This document shows, one piece after another, positions 1 through 58,945 of a stretch of 64,000 nucleotides of DNA. The notes under the pieces were generated by a model that was not told the DNA's origin, searched no databases, and worked only from the letters and a program-made list of their open reading frames with translations. The stretch comes from Malacoraja senta (lineage: Eukaryota): NCBI GenBank assembly GCA_038087875.1, contig CM075985.1, positions 12,524,001-12,588,000 on the forward strand. The letters are read 5' to 3'. Each line of letters opens with the position of its first letter. Positions within the stretch are counted from its first letter, which is position 1. Position numbers and translations under genes: made by a program.

Positions 1-1062
1 TATCAGTGACTGAGTATGTGAGCATAAGACTATGTATAAGTAAGTGCAAGTTAGTGGCTGTAAAATTCAGCTCCATGTTTCCTGTTGTTGCAGTTGCAAA
101 TTGATTCTAGCATGGTGAACAAAATGTGCAAGCATATTTGTTGCATACGCTGCACCAAGAGACATGTTGGTAAGGACATTAGTGCTGGTGACGATAATGC
201 CCACTGGCAGTATACAGTGTCGGCAGATGACAATATCACTCAGTATGCAACACTGATTTGACACCAGCTCTGCTAAATCAGAGTTCAATGCTTCAGTTCT
301 CTTATTCTAGGATAGCTGAACATGCACTCAGCAGCAGAAAGCAACCTCCACCCGCATTAATAGTAGGAATCATCAACAATGTGTTTGGCACGGTCGAGTT
401 GGGCCAAACGGCCAGTTTCCACATGTGGATAAATGACTCTAAAACTTGCAGGTTAATAATCTATTGGTTTCTAGTGGTCATTATAATTCAAAAGATTTCA
501 TAAAGTCTACAAGGAGCGGTTTGCAAGTGGCTGAATAACATTCACCTGATGTCAAGGCTTCTGGGCAAATCTGTTGATCCCAGTTACGGGTGCATGGATA
601 TTCTCCTTGGGGGATAACCAAGAGAATAAGCAGAGGGTACTCAGAGCAGAACAGAAGTGGGACAACAGAAGAGGAATAGGGGCATTGGCGTTCGGCAAGA
701 GACTACATTCACCCAGAGTTTTCAGGGAATAATTCTCCCACCTGAATTATTGAGAGGAACCATGCATGAGAAGGAGGCATGGTAAGGATGTCCTTATTGA
801 AATGTGTCTTGTTCCAATTGTAACCTCAGAGCCTAGTGAGGATTGCTTTTCCACCGGCTGTCAAGGTGATTGTGGTCATGAACTTTTATGCTTTGGGCTG
901 CCTCCAGGCTGGAGATATTTAAAATGTCTTGAAATGTGATCCATACTTTTCCAAGTGGACTGAGTATCTCTTTTTCTCTCTCAACAGAAAGTTACAACCG
1001 GAATGGAGTTATGAAGATTATAGATTTTCCCATGCTATAGGATGCATCTCATGTGGGACCTT

Positions 1063-2165
1063 TGATAAGGTCCCACATAGGAGATTAGTTGGCAAAATTA
1101 GAGCACATGATATTGGGGGTAGGGTACTGACATGGATAGAAAATTGGTTGGCAGACAGGAAACAAAGAGTAGGGATTAACGGGTCCCTTTCAGTATGGCA
1201 GGCAGTGACTAGTGGGGTACCACAAGGCTCGGTGCTGGGTCCGCAGCTATTTACAATAAACATTAATGATTTAGATGAAGGGATTAAAAGTAACATTAGC
1301 AAATTTGCAGATGACACAAAGCTGGGTGGCAGGGTGAACTGTGAGGAGGATGCTATGAGGATGCAGGGTGACTTGGACAGGTTGGGAGAGTGGGCAGATG
1401 CATGGCAGATGCAGTTTAATGTGGATAAATATGAGGTTATCCACTTTGGTGGCAAAAACAGGAAGGCAGATTATTGTCTGAATGGTGTCAATTTGGGAAA
1501 ATGGGAAGTACAACGAGATCTGGGGGTCCTTGTTCATCAGTCACTGAAAGTAAGCATGCAGGTGCAGCAGGCAGTGAAGAAAGCTAATGGCATGTTGGCC
1601 TTCATAACAAGGGGAGTTGAGTATTGGAGTAAAGAGGTCCTTCTGCAGTTGTACAGGGCCTTGGTGAGACCACACATGGAGTATTGTGTGCAGTTTGGGT
1701 CTCCAAATTTGAGGAAGGTCATTCTTGCTATTGAGGGAGTGCAGCGTAGGTTCACGAGGTTAATTCCCGGGATGGCGGGACTGTCATATGTTGATTATTA
1801 AGGTATTGGACATGCTAGAGGCAGGAAACATGTTCCCAATGTTAGGGCAGTCCAGAACCAGGGGCCACAGTTTAAAGATATGGGATAGGCCATTTAGGAC
1901 GGAGATGAAGAAAAACGTTTTCACCCAGAGAGTTGTGAATCTGTAGAATTCTCTGTCTCAGAAGGCAGTGGAGGCCAATTCTCTGGATGCTTTCAAGAGA
2001 GAGTTGGATAGAGCTCTTAAAGGTAGCAGAGTCAAGGGATATGGGGAGAAGACAGGAACGGGGTACTGATTGTGGATGATCAGCCATGATCACAGTGAAT
2101 GCCACTACATTGTGCTGGCTCGAAGGGCCGAATGGCCTACTCCTGCACCTATTGTCTATTGTATC
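1063..2165 (+). mobile_element. CR1 (HER1-like) LINE, 5'-truncated RT/3' end with internal deletion near 1790
   Basis: FDKVPH, GVPQGSVLGP, KFADDTK motifs and a CR1 3' UTR ending ctcctgcacct plus short-repeat tail. Confidence 0.93.
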
Positions 2166-7886: not shown

Positions 7887-8207
7887 CCTGGAGCTGAGTA
7901 ACCTCTTCGGAGTTTTTCTTCTGTCGACTGTCACTTTTCATCTGTATCTCTGCTCGGAGTGTGGTGATCTCCAGCTCATACTCCACTGTTGTCTGCTGAA
8001 GGTGTTCCAGCTCTGCCCGAATACGACATAGCTCCTCCTGCAATGTTGCAATCTCATTTTCCCGTTCTCCCGCTGCCTCCTCGGCTGCCTGACGGAGATT
8101 CACAATCTCCTCCTGTGCGCAGTGAAGTTCCTCATGTGCTTCTGTCAGCTCACTCTCCTTCTCTTCCTCCAAGCTCTCAATCTCCTCTTGAACGGACCGA
8201 AGCTGTA
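7887..8207 (-). CDS. CCDC136: 321-nt coiled-coil exon (VQLRSVQEEIESLEEEKESEL...EEVTQLQ)
   Basis: Acceptor ttgtcctattcag, donor CAGG|gtatga, phase 1-1. EKESEL, LRQAAE, LQEELCR and LRAEIQMKS match CCDC136 better than SLMAP (recalled). Confidence 0.9.
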
Positions 8208-8883: not shown

Positions 8884-10630
8884 AAGTCAAGGGTCGAGAG
8901 TGTTTTATTGTCATATGTCCCGAGAACAATGACATTTTTATTTGCAGCAGCACAACAGACAAGTAAACATAGTACTCTGTAAGCACCATAATAAACAACA
9001 AAAACATTTAGTATATAAAAACAAACAAATAATAATAGCGCAACGACAAAATAATGCCCCCACATCTATGTAGTTCGGAGCATAGTTGGAGCGTTTAATA
9101 GCTGGTTGTTGGAAAGAAGCTGCTCCTGAACCTGGATGTGACAGTTTTCAGGTTCCTATACCTTCTTCCCGATGGCAGGAGTGAAATGAGTGTGTGGCCA
9201 GGGTGGTGTGGGTCTATGATGATGCTGGCTGCCTTTTTGAGGCAGCTCCTCCTTAGATCTTTTGATGGTGGGGAGGTCAGTTCCTGTGATGTTCATGTTC
9301 ACCAGTTTTTGCAAACGTTCTCCTTCCTGGGCATTGGAGTTTGCTGAACCAGGCCGTGATGTAACCAGTCAGTATGCTCTTCACTGTACATTTATTCTAT
9401 TCCTTGGAGCACAGGAGGATGAGGGGTGATCTTATAAAGGTGTACAAAATCATTAGATCATATGCAGAATAGGGGAATCTAGGACCAGAGGAAATAGGTT
9501 CAAGGTGAAGGGGAAAAGATTTAATAAGAATCTGAGGTGTGACTTTTTCACACAAAGGGTGGTGGGTGTATGGAACATGCTGCCCGATGAGGTAGTTGAG
9601 GCTGGGACTACCCCAACGTTTAAGAAACAGTTAGACAGGTACATGGATAGGACAGGTGTGGAGCGCAGGTCCAAGCGCAGGCCAGTGGGACTAGTGTAGC
9701 TGGGGCATGTTGGTCGGTGCGGGCAAGTTTGGCCGAAGGGTCCGTTTCCACACTGTATCACTCTATGACTATGGCTCTATCTGCAGAAGTTCAAGAGAGT
9801 ATTCGTCGACATACTGAATCTCCGTAATCTTCCAAGGGAGTAGAGGTGCTGATGGGCTTTCTTTATGATTTCATCAGTGTGCTGTGTTCAGGACAGATCT
9901 TCATAGATATGCATGCCCACCAATTTGAAATTTTTGATTCTCTCCACTACCGTCCCATCGATGAGGACAGGTTTGTGCATCCTCGGCCTTTCCCTTCTAA
10001 ATTCAACAATTGGTTCCTTGGTTTTACTGACGTTGAGAACAAGATTGTTGTTCTGGCACCATTCGGTCAGTCAATCGATCTCCCTCCTGTATTTTGACTC
10101 ACCATCATCCGTAATTCGTCCAACAACGGTAGTGTCATCGGCGAATTTAAAGATGCAGTTGGAACTGTGTCTGGTTACACAGTCATGGGTATAGAGTGAG
10201 TGGAGCAGGAGGCTGAGCACACTGCCTTGAGGAGCTCCTGTGCTTATGGTTATCAAGTTGCTGCCAATCCGTACAGATCGTGTTCTGTTAAAGGGGAAGT
10301 CGCGGATCCAGCTGCAGAGGAATACACAGAAACCCCGTTCCCTAAGCTTAGCAAACAGTTTGGAGGGGATAATAGTGTTGAATGGCGAGCTGTAGTCAAT
10401 GAACAACAGCCTGATATATGTGTTTTTATTGTCCAAGTGGCCCACTGCAGAGTGGAGAGCCAGCAAGATCACATCCTCCGTTGCCATGTTGTGGCGGTAG
10501 GCAAATTGTAGTGGGTCCTGGTTCTTGTTGAGGTAGGAGTTGATATATGCCATAACCAACCTCTCAAAGCACTTCATCACCACGGATATTAGTGCCACCG
10601 GTCGGTAGTCATTGAAGCATGTCACCTTAC
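8884..10630 (-). mobile_element. Rex1/Babar-like LINE, 5'-truncated
   Basis: ORF 10071..10625 has NDYRPVAL..VMKCFERLV, DPLQFAYR, LFIDYSS.FNTI, GAPQG, KFADDTT. 3' tail atgacaataaa near 8905. Confidence 0.88.
9393..9780 (+). mobile_element. CR1 3' fragment nested in the Rex1/Babar copy
   Basis: FFTQRVVGVWN motif and ctatga tail. Interrupts the host sequence ...ctgtaca/tctgcagaagttc. Confidence 0.85.
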
Positions 10631-12767: not shown

Positions 12768-12842
12768 CTTGGAGACGCTGGATCTGTTTGGCAAAGTTTT
12801 CAGTCTGTTGCACATTGACCAATCGTTGTTCCTCTAGCAATC
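12768..12842 (-). CDS. CCDC136: 75-nt exon (RLLEEQRLVNVQQTENFAKQIQRLQ)
   Basis: Acceptor ...ccaaacactgcag, donor CAAG|gtgagt, phase 1-1. Matches CCDC136 [25 protein letters not shown] (recalled). Confidence 0.9.
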
Positions 12843-13995
12843 CTGCAGTGTTTGGAAAGGCAAGAGATTGATATGACAGCGGCTAAATACATCGTGAATC
12901 TCCCTCTACACTCTTCCACTGAACATTGCCAGGGGAGGTAGAAAGGTAAAGCTCACCAGAGTGTTCCAGAAAGCAGGATGGCAGTGGGAGCTGAGGTCAT
13001 GGACCTGCAACATTAACTCTATTCTCTTCTCACAGATGCTGCCTGACCTGCTGAATATTTCCAGCAATTTTAATCTTTGAGTTGCAAGAAAATGTAGGGA
13101 GCTATAAGGAAATAAAAATGGTTGATTGGCTGAGTAGGGACATAGCACATGAAATACAAAGTGGGATAATGTGAAGTCCTCCATTTTGGAAGAAAAAAGT
13201 AGAAATGTTGATTTAATTTTTTTAATTGGGTGTTGAAAAGATCTGCTGTTCAGAAGTACTTGGACCAGTTTACACAAACCCTACGTGTAGGTTCAGCAAA
13301 TCAGTAGGAAGGCAAATGGTATGTTGCCCCTTTTACAAGAGGTTTAAGTGCATGAGCAAAAACCGTTCATCCTGCAATTACAAGGGCAATTTGTGAGACT
13401 TCAACTTCTCCAGATGCCTTCGTGATAATATGTTTTCAGTTAGATATAATTCTATGGCCCAAAGGATGTAAAAGTGACTGTCTCTTGCAGTCCCATATTG
13501 AGAAAGCAGGTCCTTCACTTTCCCTGTTTCTTCTGTCTGTATGTGCTGAAAGCTCCTAACATGACTAATGCTCAAAATTGTAATGTCTTCTAATGAGAAC
13601 ATACTCAATTTTCCTCACCTCTGACTTTTATATATGCTACATGATGCTCAAAACATCCTGATATTTCTTCCCTACTGACTCCCCAACATGTCTCCCCAAT
13701 TCTTGAAACTGTCCATAAAAACCCTACATCTCCAACTCTCATTCCTATATCCAACTCCCTGACCACCTTAAGTCAGTTCCTTCAGTCTATGCCTTACCCT
13801 TCCAGCACAGCATGTCAAAGTCTGATTCTCACAACTCCCCACCAGTGCTCAGCTTCACACCAATCAGGACTATTCTTGCCAACCCTAAAACCCCCATCTC
13901 ATTCCCAGGACTGAGCATGGAATGCAGAACATCTGGTCTCACCCCCCCCTCCCCCGCCCCTCCAAAAAACCCTTTCTTTTATGAAATCCACTTAC

Positions 13996-15963
13996 TTTGT
14001 AAGTCCAAATAGCTCCTCTGGTGCCGGGCTGCTTGTTCCTGAGACTCCTCCAATTCCTTCCGTAGCTGCTTAATCTGCAACCTCAACTCATCCAATTCCA
14101 ACATACAAAGCACATTGTTGCACGATTTTGGACCAGATGACCTCATGCTACATATTTCTGGTTTGCTTAATAATTGGTCGTAAGACTTATGGAAACGTGC
14201 CACCATATCACAAAGTTCTAGATTAGCTGATATCACTGTAGATACTTTAGGATCAGTTGAGTTGATCTCAGCTGTTTTGGTAACAGATAACGCATCCTCA
14301 CCTGGGTTAGGAATAGCTAACATGATCCCAGGAACCTTAGGAGCAACGAATCTAACGTCAGAATTCTTGGGAGCAGCTGACTTGATCTCGGAAGATTTGG
14401 GATCAGCTGCTTTGGTGTCAGACATGTTGAATACAGCTGCCTTGATCTCAGAAACTTCGGAAGAAGCTGGCGTGACCTTGGAAAGTTTGGGATCAGTTGT
14501 TTTGGTCTCAGATATGTTAAGTGCAGATAACTTGACGTCAGATGTCTTGGGAGCAGCTGAATTGACCTCATATTCCTGGGAAGCAACTGACTTGACTTCT
14601 GCCTCATTGGGACCATCTGATTTGATTTTGTAATCAGTCGGCATGACTGATGTTATCTTCATATCATTGGGAGCAGATAATGTGACCTCAGAAGGCTTGG
14701 GATCAGCTGCCTTGGTCACTGACCCATTAGAAGCAGTTGACTTGATCTCAGACAACTTGGTAGTGCTTGACTTGACCTCAGAAAGTTTGGAATCAGTAGA
14801 TGTGACTTCAGATGGTTTGAGATCAGTTGACTTCACTTCAACCATCATGGGGCCAGCCGACAATACCGTAGATTGGTTAGGATCTATTAACTCTATTGTA
14901 GATGGTTTGAGAGGTGTTGATCTAACCTCAGATTGTTTGAGATCACCTGACGTGACCCTAGATGGTTTGGGATCAGATAACTGAACTTCTGTTTGTCTGA
15001 GATCAACTGGTTTCACCATGGATGGTTTGAAATTTGTTGGGTTAAATTCAGGCACAGACGAATCAGTTGATTTGACCTCAGCTGGGATGAGATCAGCAGA
15101 CTTGAATTCAGGCATTTTAAGATCAATTGACTTGACGTTGTATGGTTTGGAATGTGTTGATTCAATTTCCACTAATCTAGAATCAGCTGACTTAACTTCT
15201 GACTGTTTAGCATCAATTGCTTTGACCTCAGATGATGTAGAATGAGTTGTCTTGATTTCAGATGGTTTGGAATCTGCTAATTTGACTTCTGATACTTCAG
15301 AATCAATCATCTTGGCATCAAATGGTTTGGGATAAACTGTTTTGATCTCGGGTGGTTTGGAATCTGCTAATTTGACCTCTGACACCTTAGGATCAATTGT
15401 CTTCATCTCAGATGGCTTGTGTTCAGCTAATTTGACCTCTATCACTTTGGGATCAATTGTCTTGATATCAGATGATTTAGAACAAGTTGACTCATTCTCA
15501 GATGGTTTGAAATCAATTAACATGATCTCTGAGGCATTAGAATCAACTGCCTTGATGTCGGGTGATTTAGGGCATGTTGAATTGATTTCAGATAGTTTGG
15601 GATTATCTGACTTGATCTCTGCTATTTTAGGATCAATTTTCTTAACCTCACATGGATTGGAATATGTTGACTTGACCTCAGAAGATGTGTGAACAATTGA
15701 CCTGACCTCAGATGTCTCAGAATTAGTTGACATGACCATGGTTGGTGTGGGATCAGGTAATTTGACATCAGTTGACTTGGAATCAGGTGAACTGATCTCA
15801 GGAGCCTTGAGATTCATTGAATTTACCTCCAATATTTTGAATGCTTCTGATTTCACCTCACAGATTGGAATATCAGGTGACTTCATATGTGACTCTGGAT
15901 CTCCTGAAGATGAGACATTTGTTGTTGATTCATTTGCCTTGTTGTCTGCAGACAGCACATCAC
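13996..15963 (-). CDS. CCDC136: Giant 1968-nt exon: about 55 decapeptide repeats followed by the start of the CCDC136 coiled coil
   Basis: Within ORF 13979..16105. Acceptor tttatttttgttttacatag, donor CAAA|gtaagt, phase 1-1. The C-terminal ELDELRLQIKQLRKELEESQEQAARHQRSYLDLQ matches CCDC136 [34 protein letters not shown] (recalled). Confidence 0.85.
14210..15859 (-). repeat. Coding 30-nt degenerate tandem repeat (consensus about EVKSxDPKxS), about 55 units
   Basis: Residues 83-632 of the ORF divide into exact 10-aa blocks with E/D1, V/I2, K3, D6, K8, S10 periodicity. Confidence 0.92.
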
Positions 15964-16518
15964 CTATGTAAAACAAAAATAAACCCAATGTAGACAACAC
16001 GATCAAAGGAGATACAGCGCCAGAAGCCGATTCAATAGAATCTCTAAAGTGTTTGCCCTTGTGTGTCAGTGTGCTCAGTGTTGCCCCTGCCTGAGTGGAG
16101 AGCACAGGACCAGATTCTCACTGCACAATGAGCACAGAGCCTATCTCTTCTACATAGTGTGCCACAAGCCCAGAGTCAACCCAGTTCTGGTCACCATGAC
16201 CTGACCACCCATCATTCAATAGACCATGTTCCATGCCATTTGTCACTCACTCGCCAATGTCCTGACAGTGAGTTCCTCCTGGACAATGTGTCAAAGTCCG
16301 CATTTCTCAGCATGTCATGTCCAGAGCCCCTTCTCTCACTGGTCTGTGCTCCAATGCTGTTGTTTACACAACTGAGGCCAGTATCAACCCTGATTGGACG
16401 GCATGCCCAGAGCACATATCTCATGGGACATGCACTGAATTTATTCACCGTGCAAAAAGCCTAATTGCCACTGGACTGTGTGCCCAGAACCACCCCTCAA
16501 TAGATAATTTCTCTCTAG

Positions 16519-16666
16519 GGTAGCACAGTGGCAGAGTTGCTGCCTTAGAGCACCAGAGACCCAGGTTCGATCTTGACCTTGGGCACCGTCTGTATGGAGT
16601 TTGTACGTTTCCTTTGGATGCTCCAGTTTCCTCCCACATTCCTAAGACATACAGCTTTATAGGTTA
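16519..16666 (+). mobile_element. HE1-like V-SINE 5' half
   Basis: tRNA-like head and V-domain ctccagtttcctcccaca. Confidence 0.8.
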
Positions 16667-16668
16667 AA

Positions 16669-16872
16669 TGTGTAGAAAGGAACCGCAGATGCTGGCGTAT
16701 ACCAGAGATAGACACAAAATGCTGGAATAACTCAGCGGGTCAGGCAGCAACTCTCTAGAAAAGGAATAGGTGTCGTTTTGGGTGGAAACGCGGGTGTGAA
16801 GATGGGTTCTGACCTGAAACATCACCTATTCCTTTTCTCCAGAAATGCTGCCTGACCCGCTGAGTAATTCCA
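16669..16872. mobile_element. Palindromic Penelope-derived element
   Basis: Imperfect inverted arms (ctcagcgggtcaggcagca / tgctgcctgacccgctgag). Confidence 0.8.
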
Positions 16873-17593
16873 AAATCCTTTTGTAAGAAAGGCCAACATA
16901 TGAATTGTCCTCCATATGGTTGCTGCACCTAGATGTTAGCCTTCAGTGACCTTTGCACAAACACACGTAGGTCCCCAATTTCTCACTTTTAACACTGTTT
17001 TTCAGTTATGTACATCTCAATGGATAGTGTCATTTTTTCCCCACATTATTGTTCATGTCACATTCTCCCACCTTTATTCAGTTTGTCCATAACCTCTTAA
17101 ACCCTCATTCCATCCTCCTCCATACTTATAATCTCACAAGCTTGAGCATCATGAGCAATGACGTTTCATACCCTCAGGAAAATTATTGGTATAGATTGTG
17201 AATAGCTGAGGTTCAATTAGATTTAGCAATTTTCATAACCTGAGAAGCATCTATTGATTCCTTGCGTTCTGCCTAACAATCAATCTATGTAGTGTATTAC
17301 TATAATGTATTCCATCACACTCCGAATTTTTAGATGATGGAAAAGTCTTTGGGTGTCTTGAGGCGAGCCACAAACCGCAGGTGATTCAGCCTTTGATCTG
17401 CTCCTAAATTCATGTATTTATGTGCTTGCACCAGTTGAGCTTCTGGTACTTGGTGACTCCCAGGATGCTGATAGTGAGAATGGCTGGATAGCAGTGTTCG
17501 TTGCATTCCTGTACTATACTATCTACCATCAGGAGACACCTCAAACCAGTAGAGAGAGATAACACCAATCCTGTCTCTGCAGAATAAGCTCAC

Positions 17594-17653
17594 CAATATT
17601 AGCATCCTCTCTGAGCCCACCATAGCTGGCATCAAGGCTCTTCACTGAGCCAG
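17594..17653 (-). CDS. CCDC136: 60-nt exon (AGSVKSLDASYGGLREDANI)
   Basis: Acceptor ctctactttgcag, donor G|gtgagc, phase 1-1. GSVKSL resembles human CCDC136 GGSVGSL (recalled). Confidence 0.75.
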
Positions 17654-20789: not shown

Positions 20790-23345
20790 GATATTAGTAG
20801 TAAGCACAAGGTAGTGATTGTGGGAGATTTCAATTTTCCACACATAAACTGGGAAACACATTCTGTAAAAGGGCTGGATGGTTTGGAGTTTGTAAAATGT
20901 GTGCAAGATAGTTTTTTGCAGCAATACATAGAGGTACCTACTAGAGAAGGGGCAGTGCTGGACCTCCTGTTAAGAAATGAGACAGGGCAGGTGGCGGAGG
21001 TATGCGTCGGGGAGCACTTCGGGTCCAGTGATCACAATACCATTAGTTTCAATATAATTATGGAGAGGGTCAGAACTGGACCTAGGGTTGAGATTTTTGT
21101 TAGGAGAAAGGCTAACTTTGAGGAGATGCGAAAGGATTTAAAAGGAGTGAATTGGGACATGTTGTTTTATGGGAAGGATGTAGAAGAAAAATAGAGGACA
21201 TTTAAGGGTGAAATTGTAAGAGTACAGAATCTTTATGTCCCTGTTCGGTTGAAAGGAAATAGTAAAAAATGGAAAGAGCCATGGTTTTCAAGGGAAATTG
21301 GACACTTGGTTCGGAAAAAGAGAGAGATCTACAATAATTATAGGCAGCATGGAGTAAATGAGGTGCTTGAGGAGTATAAAGAATGTAAAAAGAATATTAA
21401 GAAAGAAATTAGAAAAGCTAAAAGAAGATATGAGGTTGCTTTGGCAAGTAAGGTGAAAGTAAATCCAAAGGGTTTCTACAGCTATATTAATAGCAAAAGG
21501 ATAACAAGGAATAAAATTGGTCCATTAGAGAGTCAGAGTGGACAGCTATCTGCAGAGCCAAAAGAGATGGGGGAGATATTGAACAATTTCTTTTCTTCGG
21601 TATTCACGAAGGAGAAGGATATGGAATTATGTGAGATAAGGGAAACAAGCAGAGTAGCAATGGAAACTGTGAGATTCAAAGAAGAGGTGCGGACACTTTT
21701 GAAAAATATGAAAACGGATAAGTCTCCAGGTCCTGACAGGATATTCCCTAGGACATTGAGGGAAGTTAGTGTAGAAATAGCAGGGGCTATGACAGAAATA
21801 TTCCAAATGTCATTAGAAACGGGAATAGTGCCGGAGGATTGGCGTACTGCGCATGTTGTTCCGTTGTTTAAAAAGGGTTCGAAGAGTAAACCTAGCAATT
21901 ATAGACCTGTTAGTTTGACATCAGTAGTGGGCAAATTAATGGAAAGGATACTTAAAGATAATATATATAAGCATCTGGATAAGCAGGGTCTGATTAGGAA
22001 CAGTCAACATGGATTTGTGCCTGGAAGGTCATGCTTGACTAATCTTCTTGAATTTTTCGAAGAGGTTACTAGGGAAATTGATGAGGGTAAAGCAGTGGAT
22101 GTTGTCTATATGGACTTCAGTAAGGCCTTTGACAAGGTTCCTCATGGAAGGTTGGTTAAGAAGATTCAATTGTTGGGTATTAATGGTGGAGTAGCAAGAT
22201 GGATTCAACAGTGGCTGAATGGGAGATGCCAGAGAGTAATGGTGGATGGCTGTTTGTCAGGTTGGAGGCCGGTGACTAGTGGGGTGCCTCAGGGGTCTGT
22301 GTTGGGTCCACTGTTGTTTGTCATGTACATCAATGATCTGGATGATGGTGTGGAAAATTGGATTAGTAAGTATGCAGATGATACTAAAATAGGTGGTGTT
22401 GTGGATAATGAAGTAGATTTTCAAAGTCTACAGAGAGATTTAGGCCATTTGGAAGAGTGGCTGAAAGATGGCAGATGGAGTTTAACGCTGACAAATGTGA
22501 GGTGCTACATCTCGGCAGGACAAATCAAAATAGGACGTACACGGTAAATGGTAGCGAATTGAGGAATGCAGTTGAACAGAGGGATCTAGGAATAACTGTG
22601 CATAGTTCCCTGAAGGTGGAATCTCATGTAGATAAGGTGGTAAAGAAAGCTTTTGGTGTGCTGGCCTTTATAAATCAGAGCATTGAATATAGAAGTTGGG
22701 ATGTAATGTTAAAATTGTACAAGGCATTGGTTAGGCCAATTCTGGAGTATGGAGTACAATTTTGGTCGCCTAATTATAGGAAGGATGTCAACAAAATAGA
22801 GAGAGTGCAGAGGAGATTTACTAGAATGTTGCCTGGGTTTCAGCAACTAAGTTACAGAGAAAGGTTGAACAAGTTAGGTCTTTATTCTTTGGAGCGCAGA
22901 AGGTTAAGAGGGGACTTGATAGAGGTCTTTAAAATTATGAGCGGGTTAGACAGAGTGGACGTGGATAAGCTTTTCCCATTGAGAGTAGGGAAGATTCAAA
23001 CAAGGGGACATGACTTGAGAATTAAGGGACAGAAGTTTAGGGGGAACATTAGGGGGAACTTCTTTACTCAGAGAGTGGTAGCCGTGTGGAATGAGCTTCC
23101 AGTGGAAGTGGTGGAGGCAGGTTCGATGTTATCCTTTAAAAATAGATTGGATGGGTATATGGACGGGAAAGGAATGGAGGGTTATGGTCTGAGTGCAGGT
23201 AGATGGGACTAGGGGGAAGTATTTATTTTTAATTAAAAAAAATAAAAAATAAAAAATAAAAAACTTAAAATGTTCGGCACGGCCTTGAAGGGCCGAGATG
23301 GCCTGTTTCCGTGCTGTTATGGTTATATGGTTATATTATATGGTC
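20790..23345 (+). mobile_element. CR1 LINE (distinct subfamily), 5'-truncated within the endonuclease, stop and frameshift disrupted
   Basis: ORFs 20814..21194 (GDFN, SDH), 21249..22547 (YRPVSLTS, QHGF, KYADDTK) and 22457..23212. Tail (ggttat)n. Confidence 0.95.
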
Positions 23346-27344: not shown

Positions 27345-30268
27345 CTTACATTTTTGAATTGATAATATTGTCAATTATTATTACATTGTCTCCAATACCT
27401 TTTGCCTTTTTTGATTTTTTAAACTAGATAGAACTAAAAAGATAGATGAAGTAAAGAAAGAAAAGAGAGAGAAGAAAAGAGAGAGAAAGGAAAAAAAACA
27501 AAAACAAAAACAAAAAAAAACCCCAAAACAAAAAACAAAAAACAAAACAGAAAAGAAAAAGATAGTTAAAGAAGAATGGAAAAATTTATTAAAATAAAAA
27601 ACTTCATTCGAGATATATTCGTACATTTCAGAGTATAGCATTTCATCCATTCTTTAGCCTGAGTGTTAGTCAGGTTCCTGTGCTGAACCATTCTGACCCT
27701 TTAAATAATCAATAAAGGGAGACCATGTTCCAACGAATAATTCCTGTTTGTCCAACAGGGAAAATCTGATTCTTTCCACGTTTAAGGTCTCCGTCATTTC
27801 TATAATCCACATTTTGATTGTGGGGGTTATAGGGCCTTTCCAAAATTTTAGAATTAATTTTTTTCCTGTTATTATACTATAATCAATAAAGTTTCTTTGT
27901 GTTGTTGTAAATGTTTGATTTAATTCTAATGTTCCGAGTATTATTAATTTTGGATCCGGGTCCAATTGTGTGCTGGTCACTTTAGATATTATACTGAAAA
28001 TATTTACCCAGAATTTTTTTATTTTTATACAGTTTGCAAACATATGAGATAAGTTAGCTTCTAAATGTTGACATTTATCACATATAGGTGAGATATGTTG
28101 AAAGATTTTATGTAATTTTGTTTTTGAATAATGTAACCTATGTATTACTTTAAATTGTATTAAAGAATGTCTGGCATTTAATGAACATTGATGTATGTGT
28201 TGTAAACTTTCTTCCCAAGTATCTTTCGTTATTATTTGATTTAATTCTTTTTCCCATGTTTGTCTGTGTAAGTCCGTCGATGGAATGTCACTGTCTAATA
28301 AAATATTATATATATAAGATATTAATTTTTCTGTATTAGGATGTTTATTCCAACATTCGTCAAGAATTTCTGAATTTCTAATTCGAAAATTTTGAGTATT
28401 CGATTTTACATAATCTCTGAGTTGAAGATATCTGAAAAAATCATTTCCTCGAAGTCCATAAGTCTGTTGCAACTCCTGAAATGTCAGAAAAGTGCCTTCC
28501 TTGTAAAGTTGTCCCATATTTTTAATTCCATAATTCTTCCATTGTGTAAAACCCCTGTCCAACCATGAGGGCTTAAACAAAGGGTTATTCACAATTGGAA
28601 GAAAAAGTGATAAATTATCTAATTTTAATGTATTTTTTAATTGTTTCCAAATTCGTATAGCACTAAATATTATAGGGTTTTCCCTATAAATTTTTTTGTT
28701 TAATTTAGACGTAGCAAATAATATCGAGCCGATATCAAAAGGTAAACAATCTTCCTTTTCCATTTTTAACCAATCTGGTTGTTGATCTATTTCTTCCAAC
28801 CAGAAATTCATATTTTTAATATTAACTGCCCAAAAATAAAACAGAAAGTTTGGTAAAACCAAGCCTCCATTTATTTTTGATTTACACAAATGTCTTTTGT
28901 TTATCCTATGATTCTTATAATCCCAGATAAAATCATTAACAATGGAATCCAATTTTTTTTTAAAGTTTTTTGACAAATATATCGGAATTGTCTGAAAAAG
29001 GTATAATATTTGCGGTAAAAAAAATCATTTTTACGGCATTAATTTTGCCAACCATTGAGATAGGAAGTGTTTTCCAATATTGAATATTCTTATGTAGTTT
29101 GTTCAGTAATGGGGGAAAATTTGCTTTAAATAATGATGTATATATCTTAGTTACGTAAATGCCTAGGTATTTGAATTTTTCGTTTACTATTTTAAATGGA
29201 AATTGTTGTATTATCTGTTTGTTGTGTTCCCTTATTGGCATAATTTCACTTTTATTCCAATTTATTCTGTATCCTGAGAGTGAACCAAATTGGGTTATTA
29301 GCTTTAATAAGTTTGGAATACTAATTTCTGGTTTTGTAATGTAAATTAGTACATCATCTGCGTATAGAGAAATTTTATTCACTGTATCCTTTGTGTTATA
29401 CCCATGTATTTCCGGATGACCCCTAACTCTTTCTGCGAGTGGCTCAATAGCAAGCGCAAATAATAATGGAGATAACGGGCATCCTTGTCTAGGCTGAATT
29501 TAGATGACAACCTTTGGTTTGTTAATATTCTAGCCGTAGGGTTTGTATATAACAGTTTTATCCATGTGCAGAATTTCTCCCCTAGCTGCATATTTTCCAT
29601 CACCGAAAATAAATAGGACCATTCAACCTGATCAAAAGCTTTTTCAGCGTCAAGTGAGATTATTGCTAGATCTTCATTAATAATTCTCTTAGAATAAATA
29701 ATATTAAATTATCTTCTTAGATTATAATATGAGTACCGTTTCTGAATAAAGCCTGAATAAAGGGTGTATTAATTTATTCATCACTGTACTTAATCTATGC
29801 GCTAGTATTTTAGTTAATATTTTCTGATCTGTATTTAAAAGTGCAATTGCTCTATATGATCCCGGATCTTCCGGATCTTTATCAAATTTAGGAATAAGTG
29901 TTATTATAGATTCATTTAAAGTATCTGGAAGTTTCTGTTGAGTATAGATATGCTCATACAGCCTTTGTAAACGTGGGGAGAGCAAGTCATAATTTTTTTT
30001 ATAGAATTCAGAGCCTAAACCATCTGGTCCTACTGCTTTACCATTTTTTAAAGAGCCAATAGACTCCTCAATATCCTTTATCGTAATCTCCCTTTCTAAT
30101 AATTCTCTATCGTTTGAATCTAAACCTTTTAAATGACATTTTAGTAAAAAATCTGCTATTCCTTCTGGTTGTACAATAGTTTTAATTGAATAAAGATTAT
30201 GATAGTATTGGAGAAATCTTTCGTTTATATCCTTGGGCATTTTTAATAATTCTCCTGTTCTAATTTTA
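27345..30268 (-). mobile_element. L1/Tx1-clade LINE ORF2 3' part, frameshifted, 5'-truncated
   Basis: KAVGPDG, SYRAIALLNTDQKIL, ISLYADDVLIY, SGYRINWNKS, GGLVLPNF and C-terminal CxxC...H..C motifs. T-rich 3' UTR. Confidence 0.93.
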
Positions 30269-51851: not shown

Positions 51852-51944
51852 TATTTTCTATGTTTCTATGTTTCTATGTACAATACTCACTTGTAGTCTC
51901 CCCGAGGTCCCAAATAAATACCATAAGACATTTTCACGCTTACA

Positions 51945-53154
51945 TGTGGTGTATCTGGACTTCCAGAAGGCTTTCGATAAGGTCCCACATAAGAGATTAG
52001 TATACAAACTTAAAGCACATGGCATTGGGGGTTCAGTATTGATGTGGATAGAGAACTGGCTGGCAAACAGGAAGCAAAGAGTAGGAGTAAACGGGTCCTT
52101 TTCACAATGGCAGGCAGTGACTAGTGGGGTACCGCAAGGCTCAGTGCTGGGACCCCAGCTATTTACAACATATATTAATGATCTGGTTGAGGGAATTGAA
52201 GGCAATATCTCCAAGTTTGCGGATGACACTAAGCTGGGGGGCAGTGTTAGCTGTGAGGAGGATGCTAGGAGACTGCAAGGTGACTTGGATAGGCTGGGTG
52301 AGTGGGCAAATGTTTGGCAGATGCAGTATAATGTGGATAAATGTGAGGTTATCCATTTTGGTGGCAAAAACAGGAAAGCTGACTATTATCTAAATGGTGG
52401 CCGACTAGGAAAAGTGGAGATGCAGCGAGACCTGGGTGTCATGGTACACCAGTCATTGAAAGTAGGCATGCAGGTGCAGCAGGCAGTGAAGAAAGCGAAT
52501 GGTATGTTAGCTTTCATAGCAAAAGGATTTGAGTATAGGAGCAGGGAGGTTCTACTGCAGTTGTACAGGGTCTTGGTGAGACCACACCTGGAGTATTGCG
52601 TACAGTTTTGGTCTCCAAATCTGAGGAAGGACATTATTGCCATAGAGGGAGTGCAGAGAAGGTTCACCAGACTGATTCCTGGGATGTCAGGACTGTCTTA
52701 TGAAGAAAGACTGGATAGACTTGGTTTATACTCTCTAGAATTTAGGAGATTGAGAGGGGATCTTATAGAAACTTACAAAATTCTTAAGGGGTTGGACAGG
52801 CTAGATGCAGGAAGATTGCTCCCGATGTTGGGGAAGTCCAGGACAAGGGATCACAGCTTAAGGATAAGGGGGAAATCCTTTAAAACCGAGATGAGAAGAA
52901 CTTTTTTCACACAGAGAGTGGTGAATCTCTGGAACTCTCTGCCACAGAGGGTAGTCAAGGCCAGTTCATTGGCTATATTTAAGAGGGAGTTAGATGTGGC
53001 CCTTGTGGCTAAAGGAATCAGAGGGTATGGAGAGAAGGCAGGTACGGGATAATGAGTTGGATGATCAGCCATGATCATATTGAATGGCGGTGCAGGCTCG
53101 AAGGGCCGAATGGCCTACTCCTGCACCTAATTTCTATGTTTCTATGTTTCTATG
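51945..53154 (+). mobile_element. Young CR1, 5'-truncated, uninterrupted RT C-terminal frame
   Basis: ORF 51868..53052 (YLDFQKAFDKVPH...KFADDTK). (ttctatgt)n tail. Confidence 0.95.
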
Positions 53155-56946: not shown

Positions 56947-58945
56947 ACATAGAAACATAGAACATAGAAAATAGGTGCAGGAGTAGGACATTTGGCCCTT
57001 CGAGCCAGCACCACCATTCAATATGATCATGGCTGATCATCCAAAATTATTCCCTTTGCCCTAAGAGCTAAATCTACCTCTCTCTTGAAAACATCCAGTG
57101 AATTGGCCTCTACGGCCTTCTGTAATAGAGAATTCCACAGATTCACAACCCTCTGGGTGAAACGTTTTTCCTCATCTCAGTCCTAAATGGCCTACCTCTT
57201 ATTCTTAAAATCTGTGACCCTTGGTTCTGGACTCTCCCAACATCGGGAAATTTTTTCCTGCATCTACGCTGTCCAATCCTCTATGAATTTTATGTGTTTC
57301 TATAAGATCCCCTCTCATCCTTTAAATTCCAGCTAATACAAGCCCAGTCGACCCATTCTTTCATCATATGTCAGTCCCGCCATCCCGGGAATTAACCTGG
57401 TGAACCTACACTGCACTCCCTCAATAGCAATAATGTCCTTCCTCAAATTAGGAAATCAAAATTGCACACAATACTCTAGGTGCGGTCTCACCAGGGCCCT
57501 GTACAACTGCAATAGGACCTCCTTGATTCTAAACTCAAATCCTCTCACAATGAAGGCCAACATGCCATTAGCTTTCTCACTGCCTGCTGTACTTGCATGC
57601 TTACTTTCAGTGACTGATGTACAAGCACACCCAGGTCACATTCCACCTCCCCTTCTAATCTGACACCATTCAGATAATAATCTACCTTCCTGTTCTTGCC
57701 ACCAAAGTGGATAACCTCACATTTATCCACATTATACTGCATCTGCCATGGTTCTGCCCACTCACTCAACCTATCCAAGTCACCCTGCAGCCTAATAACA
57801 TCCTCCTCGCAGCTCACACTGCCACCCAGGTTTGTGTCATCTGCAAACTTAGAGATGTTACATTTAATTCCCTCATGTAAATCGTTAATATATATTGTAA
57901 ACAACTGAGGTCCCAGCACCGAGCCCTATGGCACCCCACTAGTCACTGCCTGCCATTCTGAAAAGGACCCATTAATTCCTACTCTTTGCTTCCTGTCTGC
58001 CAACCAGTTCCTTATCCATGTCAATATCCAACCCTCAATACCAAGCTCTAATTTTGCACACTAATCTCTTGTGTGGGACCTTGTCAAAGGTTTTTTGAAA
58101 GTCCAGATACACCACATCCACTGGCTCTCCCTTATCCATTCTACTTGTTACATCCTCAAAAAATTCCAAAAGGTTAGTCAAGCATGATTTCCCCTTCATA
58201 AATGCATGCTGACTTTGACCGATCCTGTCACTGCTTTCCAAATGCGCTGCTATTACTTCTTTAATAATCAACTCCAGCATCTTCCCCAATACCGATGTAA
58301 GGCTAACTGGTCTATAATTTCCTGTTTTCTCTCTGCCTCCTTTCTTAAAAAGTTGAGTTACTTGGCTACCCTCCAGTGCACAGGAACTGATCCAGAGTCG
58401 AGAGAACATTGGGAAATGATCACCAATGCATCCACGATTTCTATGGCCATCTCCTTGAGTACTCTGGGATGCAGACCATCAGGCCCTGGGGATTTATCTG
58501 CCTTCAGTCCCAACAGTTTACCTAACACCATTTTCTGACTAATGTGGATTCCCTTCAGCTCCTCCATCTCACTAGATCCTCGGTCTCCTAGTGTTTCTGG
58601 GAGATTGTTTGTGATTTCCTTAGTGAAGACAGAATCAAAGTCTCGTTTAACTGTTCAGCTATTTCCTTGTTTCCCATTATAAATTCACCTGTCTCTGACT
58701 GTAAGGGACCTACGTTTGTTTGTCTTCTCTAGTATTTTCCTTTTTACATTCCTAAATAAACTTTTACAGTCAGTTTTTATATTTCCCGCAAGCTTTCTTT
58801 CATGCTCTTTTTTCCCCTTCTTAATTAACCCCTTTGTCCTCCTCTGTTGAGTTCTACATTCTTCTGGTCAATTTATATGCCTCTTCCTTGGATTTAACAC
58901 TATCCTTGACTTCCCTCGTCAGCCACGGTTGTGCCGCCTTCCCAG
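56947..58945 (-). mobile_element. CR1 LINE, 5'-truncated, frameshifted
   Basis: ORFs 58358..58567, 58035..58409 and 57545..57919 (KSPGPDGLHP, NYRPVSLTS, KFADDT). Confidence 0.94.

Follow-up and report, generated by a model that had tools for sequence, protein, structure and literature searches.

A 1968-nt exon of a CCDC136-family gene carries 55 in-register decapeptide units and probably encodes a disordered spacer before a coiled coil

The window (the whole 64,000-nucleotide stretch of Malacoraja senta DNA that was analysed) contains on its minus strand an internal exon in which 55 consecutive ten-residue units stand ahead of the conserved start of a coiled coil (Table 1). At moderate confidence, the encoded chain is read as a disordered, charge-alternating polyampholyte spacer before the coiled coil, the disorder being predicted by AlphaFold2 (AF2) models built without a real alignment, and we infer both the spacer function and the inclusion of the exon in mature mRNA. 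The array is lineage-specific in the sense that it is absent from the bony-fish orthologues examined, a comparison that covers teleosts only. Its units constitute a new repeat family, and the array is a fairly ordinary case of repeat expansion, itself a well-known phenomenon.

Table 1. Coordinates of the exons and repeat features in the window
Feature	Position	Strand	Remarks
Repeat exon, internal, 1968 nt, 656 codons	15963..13996	-	AG/GT ends, phase 1-1, stop-free
Core array, 55 decapeptide units of 30 nt each, exact register	15859..14210	-	DNA consensus GAGGTCAAGTCAACTGATCCCAAACCATCT, giving EVKSTDPKPS
Single degenerate unit (HMKSPDIPIC) flanking the array on its 5' side, still in register	15889..15860	-	
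Three degenerate in-register units DMVARFHKSY, DQLLSKPEIC, SMRSSGPKSC	14209..14120	-	Partly overlap the predicted helix at exon residues 571-599
Coiled-coil start, conserved (ELDELRLQIKQLRKELEESQEQAARHQRSYLDLQ)	14098..13996	-	AF2 helix, pLDDT 82-95; homologous to teleost CCDC136 ELEVLRSQVVQLLLELEETREVSQRHEESYNELQ
Putative upstream 60-nt exon encoding GSVKSLDASYGGLREDANI, phase 1-1	17653..17594	-	Read directly from the sequence
Downstream 75-nt exon, (R)LLEEQRLVNVQQTENFAKQIQRLQ, phase 1-1	12842..12768	-	Matches LLEEERLASAHQAESFTRQIQRLQ of carp ccdc136b
321-nt exon, CCDC136_middle region, phase 1-1	8207..7887	-	Places the gene in the family
Coiled-coil exon (EALQREQLLEQKLETLQ)	33060-32821		Seen in the window

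The preliminary description of this DNA had reported a 1968-nt exon with GT-AG ends and phase 1-1 and with no stop in its repeat blocks, and all of these features were confirmed. On the minus strand the acceptor reads ...ttttgttttacatAG/GTGATG, with 15963 as the first exon base, and the donor reads ...TTACAAA/GTAAGT, with 13996 as the last; the junctions themselves read ttttgttttacatAG/GTGATGTG at 15965-15963 and GACTTACAAA/GTAAGTGG at 13996-13994. The first residues of the exon are G/DVLSADNKANE, where the glycine codon is assembled across the junction from the last base (G) of the exon ending at 17594 and the GT that opens the repeat exon. The coding frame holds no stop codons, and the two other frames hold 29 and 91. 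Phase 1-1 is common to all four consecutive exons. The coiled-coil exon at 33060-32821 may resemble SLMAP, the family to which the preliminary description putatively assigned the protein.

The gene is assigned by homology to the CCDC136 family because of the proteins matched by the 321-nt exon and because annotated CCDC136 proteins are collinear with the exons of the window, two results that also bear out its earlier description as CCDC136-like. A search with the 321-nt exon found 40 proteins, all of which carry the precomputed Pfam domain PF28341 (CCDC136_middle). Named CCDC136 or ccdc136b proteins were matched at E values from 1e-21 to 1e-54, the named matches being carp and piranha "coiled-coil domain containing 136b" and Betta "CCDC136-like", and further matches are a catshark fragment with 78% identity and a relative that is 97% identical. 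Annotated proteins of carp, Aldrovandia and Betta (P0133, P0134 and P0136) are collinear with four exons on the minus strand of the window, over the stretches 14098-13994, 12861-12766, 8208-7837 and 3873-3778. This alignment takes in the 3' end of the repeat exon, and the junction between the 13996 donor and the 12842 acceptor is confirmed by homology to annotated teleost CCDC136 proteins. A C-terminal transmembrane anchor is present in P0158, the tail of which has no match in the window, and the gene probably extends at its 3' end past position 1 of the window. Mammalian CCDC136 is linked to acrosome formation.

Division of the core array into 55 exact ten-residue blocks, from 15859 to 14210, was upheld, and in 55 of the 55 units no other of the 10 possible offsets scores as well as the register given in Table 1. 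The unit consensus is E-V-K-S-(T/A)-D-P-K-P-S, with column majorities (n = 55) of E in 36, V in 29 and I in 17, K in 31, S in 28, T and A in 14 each, D in 25, P in 21 and S in 16, K in 32, P in 15 and S in 30. Residue identity is 0.29-0.32 at lags of 10, 20, 30 and 40, 0.11-0.14 at lags of 5, 15 and 25, and approximately 0.04-0.05 at most other lags; the lag-10 identity of 0.29 compares with 0.086 in shuffled sequences (z = 17.8, 2000 shuffles). The statement that no two units are identical also held at the protein level, as there were no identical pairs among the 55. The further proposal that each decamer consists of two pentamers fared poorly, with a lag-5 z of 2.8 and a pentamer pattern, [ED]x[KR]x[ST], that fits 24 of 110 pentamers.

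At the DNA level, the units share a mean identity of 55% (maximum 90%) and depart from their consensus at 31% of positions, and a minimum spanning tree that joins all 55 takes 435 substitutions or more. The mean identity and the number of substitutions agree with the earlier view that the repeat is old. Identity between units hardly changes with the distance between them. A 90-nt higher-order repeat suggested by TRF was weak, with the best three-unit blocks 70-76% identical. The array is found in no other place within the window, and the repeat exon is single-copy, with flat depth in two related genomes. A confidently predicted helix begins within about 40 residues of the end of the 55 units and continues into the coiled-coil exons.

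The homologous region was compared in three named or carp-like teleost loci (L002 and L004, with a product almost the same as carp ccdc136b, and L006 of Betta). The teleost exon with the matching coiled-coil start has a phase-1 acceptor and begins DDVCDLKAE or DELCELKVE, and the start D/DVCDLKAE resembles the start of the repeat exon. From the beginning of the exon to the coiled coil, these three loci have approximately 55-75 E/D/K-rich residues with no 10-residue periodicity, and the linker is shorter still in a second teleost paralogue (L005). In the window, about 620 residues precede the coil, roughly 550-590 of which are in decamers. More broadly, the teleost CCDC136 and ccdc136b proteins (carp A0A8C1JPI4 and Betta), which are orthologous or paralogous to the gene described here, have the same exon order, phases and coiled-coil sequences and a similar exon start, D-[DE]-[VL]-C-[DE]-L-K, and differ in having an acidic low-complexity linker of approximately 55-75 residues in place of the roughly 620 seen here.

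Because the teleost exon has the same phase, a similar start and a short linker, the acceptor and the exon are ancestral and the decamer array has arisen within a short acidic linker by internal expansion. The earlier reading of the repeat as an expansion is borne out in that the teleost orthologues are without the array. The short acidic linker of a conserved tail-anchored coiled-coil protein would then have grown about ten-fold in one lineage and have long been kept open. A K-E-V-K-E motif lies just before the coil in the teleost linkers, and the E-V-K core of the unit may have been seeded from it, although this is a hint only.

Searches for relatives of the array itself returned no homologue. 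An exhaustive HMMER search of the repeat against 1.84 billion representative proteins gave no match at E < 1e-30, and its best matches (a giant-virus-like protein, a bacterial DVKPADKKPT-repeat protein and an AEPKQAELQS-repeat protein) were rejected as unrelated compositional matches. A word-indexed protein search found only extensin-like PF02095 proteins, which were set aside as low-complexity matches. A protein search restricted to the coiled-coil tail of the exon (residues 586-655) gave no match, a feature search of the ESM Atlas gave no usable match, and a Pfam scan of the exon gave sub-threshold matches only. Among Pfam entries, PF25296 ("Decapeptide repeat region") scored 20.7 bits against a gathering threshold of 45, with no single stretch passing, and the exon is not a member. 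No description of the array was found in the literature on CCDC136 with repeats, SLMAP and elasmobranchs.

The closest known arrangement is that of p180/RRBP1 (ER ribosome-binding protein 1), a membrane-anchored protein in which a long coiled coil is immediately preceded by 54 (dog) or 41 (human) decapeptide repeats (PMC3362647, PMC8732269). Disorder is predicted for the p180 repeats, and they are missing from one splice form, p180s, as opposed to p180L (PMC3362647, PMC8732269). The two systems are alike in having approximately 40-55 tandem ten-residue units before a coiled coil, here about 55 units with a length of 10. The units of p180 are uniformly positive and bind ribosomes and microtubules (PMC8732269), whereas the units here are charge-balanced, with a net charge of -11 over 550 residues. 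The searches also found no sequence homology between the two, the gene is a different one and the expansions are independent, and p180 is anchored N-terminally whereas CCDC136 proteins are anchored C-terminally, as seen in P0158. The likeness of the array to p180 goes no further than architecture, and the array does not belong to the p180 family; it would represent a second independent instance of the layout of some 50 decapeptides followed by a coiled coil. Other proline- and charge-rich disordered tandem repeats that serve as extended, flexible spacers or springs are the PEVK region of titin and the KSP tails of neurofilaments. The titin PEVK region has approximately 70% P+E+V+K as opposed to 38% here, with a different unit length and consensus, and neurofilament tails are built on KSP motifs, of which there are none in the array; neither shows homology to it.

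From the single sequence, AlphaFold2 gave a pLDDT of about 30 and no secondary structure over exon residues 1-567, and helices appeared only after the array, at residues 571-599 and 614-654, the latter with a pLDDT of 82-95. A second run with a five-row self-alignment gave a pLDDT of 51.6 and a pTM of 0.13, again with no secondary structure; the self-alignment consisted of five non-overlapping rows of 11 units, and both runs are weak tests made without a real alignment. The solenoid suggested in the preliminary description finds no support in these models, as they contain no strands or repeating secondary structure, within the limits of so weak a test.

The composition of the chain is 16% S, 12% K, approximately 8.5-8.7% each of V, P and E (P 8.7%), 7.8% T and 6.7% D. 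Over the 550 residues of the array there are 73 K+R and 84 D+E, with two acidic and two basic residues in the consensus unit, a fraction of charged residues (FCR) of 0.285 and a net charge per residue (NCPR) of -0.02. The charge patterning parameter kappa is 0.083, below the values of all 200 shuffles (0.187 +/- 0.019). In the polymer theory of polyampholytes, evenly mixed charges together with about 9% proline lead to an expanded, soluble coil. Hydrophobic residues make up approximately 30% of the chain and column 2 is almost invariantly V or I, which is more than is usual in a spacer and hints at some contact function.

We envisage that a 30-nt coding minisatellite would have expanded inside the short acidic low-complexity linker between the exon start and the first coiled-coil heptads, giving some 55-59 decamers or roughly 600 residues. 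The product would be a P/S/T-rich disordered chain with charges alternating as E-x-K-x-x-D-x-K-x-x, expanded and soluble. Such a long flexible spacer could keep the N-terminal region tens of nanometres away from the coiled-coil rod, and many weak repeated contact sites along it are also possible. Selection would maintain the open frame, the composition and the approximate length of the chain and not its exact sequence.

The reading frame is under selection, because no stops were observed where about 20 are expected: 2000 neutral simulations gave a mean of 20.5 stops and a minimum of 8. Shuffling bases within columns gave a mean of 4.3 stops, with a probability of 0.0025 of observing none. The repeat exon is spanned at approximately 3.4% divergence by genomic contigs from two related species (runs X7 and X9), and the frame is intact in X7: its only indels within the exon, a 12-nt deletion at 15626-15639 and one of 6 nt at 15484, leave the net frame unchanged, and the length of the X7 contig agrees exactly with this balance. 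For X9, the indel rows listed include the 6-nt deletion and an 8-nt gap at 15626. The deletions in the relatives leave a 6-residue unit 8 (-12 nt) and an 8-residue unit 13 (-6 nt).

Comparison with the surrounding sequence points to modest purifying selection on the repeat exon, much weaker than that on the coiled coil. The flanking introns have diverged by approximately 5.7% (82 differences in 1445 nt). By shared 31-mers with one relative (C), the repeat exon scored 0.33 (approximately 3.5% divergence) and the coiled-coil exon 0.72 (approximately 1%), so that the repeat exon evolves about three times faster. Six of the 12 exon differences listed are synonymous and six nonsynonymous; the dN/dS between relatives estimated from these 12 and from the exon and intron divergences is approximately 0.3-0.45, and that between units is approximately 0.73. 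Moderate constraint of this kind is typical of disordered regions.

The register is a separate matter from the frame, and the preliminary description had claimed selection on it and had called the array indel-free. The latter holds in this genome, with 0 indels, and does not hold in the related species, which carry the 12-nt and 6-nt deletions in units 8 and 13. Under assumed ratios of in-frame indels to substitutions from 1:100 to 1:33, the second being the ratio between the relatives, approximately 4-13 off-register indels would be expected in this genome and none was seen, for which the probability is between 0.013 and 2e-6. This favours some purging of partial-unit indels, and the clean register could alternatively come from slippage that favours whole units. 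Support for selection on the register is weak, as units of 6 and 8 residues are tolerated in the relatives and a global register is thus dispensable; selection on the frame is supported. With 435 or more substitutions and not one off-register indel, the array is more regular than a model based purely on length and composition would lead one to expect, which counts against that model in its purest form.

This clean register would fit a periodic binding scaffold or molecular ruler, in which each decamer or pair of decamers would contact a subunit of a periodic partner such as a cytoskeletal filament or a membrane coat, possibly adopting an extended beta or PPII-type structure upon binding in a p180-like mode, with unit length under selection. 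Strong conservation of columns E1, V/I2, K3, D6, K8 and S10, a charge alternation more regular than in any of the 200 shuffles, and the precedent of p180 (PMC8732269) would also fit a scaffold. We nevertheless regard it as unlikely, as the irregular units in relatives C and D indicate that a global register is not essential, the dN/dS between units is approximately 0.73, the AF2 models contain no regular structure, and whole-unit slippage may yield a clean register in the absence of selection. More doubtful still is the specific version in which a register-selected, charge-alternating ruler of about 55 units, of an origin independent of p180, docks a periodic partner (filament, coat or organelle surface) onto a tail-anchored coiled-coil protein; if that were true, ten-residue arrays before coiled coils would be a convergent design principle of membrane tethers. 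With its clean register and well-mixed charges, the array is a natural test case for distinguishing mere spacers from periodic binding platforms.

A search of sequencing runs by shared 31-mers found no run on record as RNA that contains the repeat exon. Sequence from portions of the repeat exon and of the coiled-coil exon is present in three small 2018 runs from a related organism (X1-X3), which are guessed to be RNA and may be DNA. Within the stretch compared, contigs from X1 and X2 lie on exon parts 14018-14183, 14793-15481, 15227-15411 and 15872-15964, and none lies on unique parts of the intron. One 310-nt contig from X1 matches up to 15964 only and continues for 217 nt that are unlike the intron, while genomic contigs of other relatives align straight through the intron upstream of 15963. 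This suggests a spliced transcript that uses the 15963 acceptor and possibly skips the 60-nt exon, although X1 itself is flagged as probably DNA. A Logan contig from the 97%-identical relative (L001) was considered as a transcript and found to be genomic, and the remaining Logan matches were single-exon genomic ORF calls.

These data bear on the possibility that the repeat is mostly absent from the mature protein, through exon skipping or an internal in-phase acceptor, and persists as a near-neutral minisatellite in a minor isoform. The frame would survive skipping of a phase 1-1 exon, the more so as all four consecutive exons are 1-1. The lack of a recorded RNA run with the exon, the unusual length of 1968 nt for an internal exon, the 58 in-phase AG sites within it (including tatctacAG/TG at 14236/14235), and the existence of a repeat-less splice form of p180 (PMC8732269) point in the same direction. 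We consider this improbable, as the complete lack of stops together with in-frame indels implies that the frame is translated often enough for selection to act, and as divergence is lower in the exon than in the intron. The better pyrimidine tract, a run of T, belongs to the 15963 acceptor, which corresponds by homology to the teleost acceptor in both phase and sequence; the X1 contig match ends exactly at this acceptor, and with a skipped exon the conserved first part of the coiled coil would be lost as well. When this gene is annotated, an internal exon of 2 kb could be missed or truncated.

Least probable among the alternatives to a disordered spacer would be a platform for multi-site modification, in which Ser/Thr phosphorylation, O-GlcNAc or Lys SUMOylation switches the properties of the linker; it may draw on the abundance of S+T (approximately 24%) and K and on the enrichment over shuffles of [ED]xK-hydrophobic (19 vs 3.2), [ST][DE] (38 vs 20) and Kx[ST] (31 vs 16) motifs, but the canonical SUMO motif is not enriched (3 vs 2.3), [ST]P (5 vs 11) and CK2-type [ST]xx[DE] (9 vs 20) are depleted, and the three enrichments are not independent evidence because they are implied by the unit consensus.

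The four consecutive exons listed in the table, which include the decapeptide-repeat exon of the CCDC136-family gene, are each in phase 1-1, and therefore skipping any one of them could keep the reading frame. Upstream of the repeat exon, two related species that carry deletions within it (C and D) have 11 nt inserted at 15974/15975. The insertion interrupts the pyrimidine tract at a distance of 11 nt from the 15963 acceptor, and the proximal stretch gttttacatAG separates it from the exon. The frame of the exon stays open for another 142 nt into the upstream intron (15964-16105), which is why a 708-aa open reading frame appears in the ORF listing; this intronic extension is probably due to chance.

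Very high-copy interspersed repeats occupy the introns on both sides of the exon, with a summed contig depth of approximately 10^5 to 10^7, compared to approximately 73 for unique sequence, in a run from a related species (X7). Numerous joints connect the two copies. The gene's introns and flanking sequence also contain many ORF fragments of reverse transcriptase (LINE-like).

Teleost CCDC136 linkers contain a K-E-V-K-E motif just upstream of the coiled coil (in the forms EKKEVKEE and EEKEVKEEK), and the decamer's E-V-K core could have grown from this motif. At the Betta splendens locus (L006, LR132023.3), the CCDC136-like exon block is present twice as identical copies 6.7 kb apart; the block was either duplicated in tandem recently or duplicated in the assembly.

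The antisense ORFs inside the decamer array have a 10-residue periodicity of their own, LTSDxLGSxx; most likely they are not genes but arise as a by-product of the repeat.

Coordinates of features in the window and at three teleost loci (L002 and L004, with products nearly identical to carp ccdc136b, and L006)
Feature	Sequence	Positions	Remarks
Consecutive phase 1-1 exons	window	17594-17653, 13996-15963, 12768-12842, 7887-8207	60, 1968, 75 and 321 nt
High-copy interspersed repeat	window	16374-16874	intron on one side of repeat exon
High-copy interspersed repeat	window	12867-13200	intron on other side
Reverse-transcriptase (LINE-like) ORF fragments	window	929-1801, 10071-10625, 21249-23212, 27666-30240, 51868-53052, 57545-58409	
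Antisense ORFs	window	14262-14633, 14643-14984, 15342-15692	+ strand; 113-123 aa
K-E-V-K-E-bearing linker	L002	7100-7230	
K-E-V-K-E-bearing linker	L004	7340-7466	
K-E-V-K-E-bearing linker	L006	10330-10397	
CCDC136-like exon block copies	L006	10001-11106, 16679-17800	each adjoins SCO1-like gene
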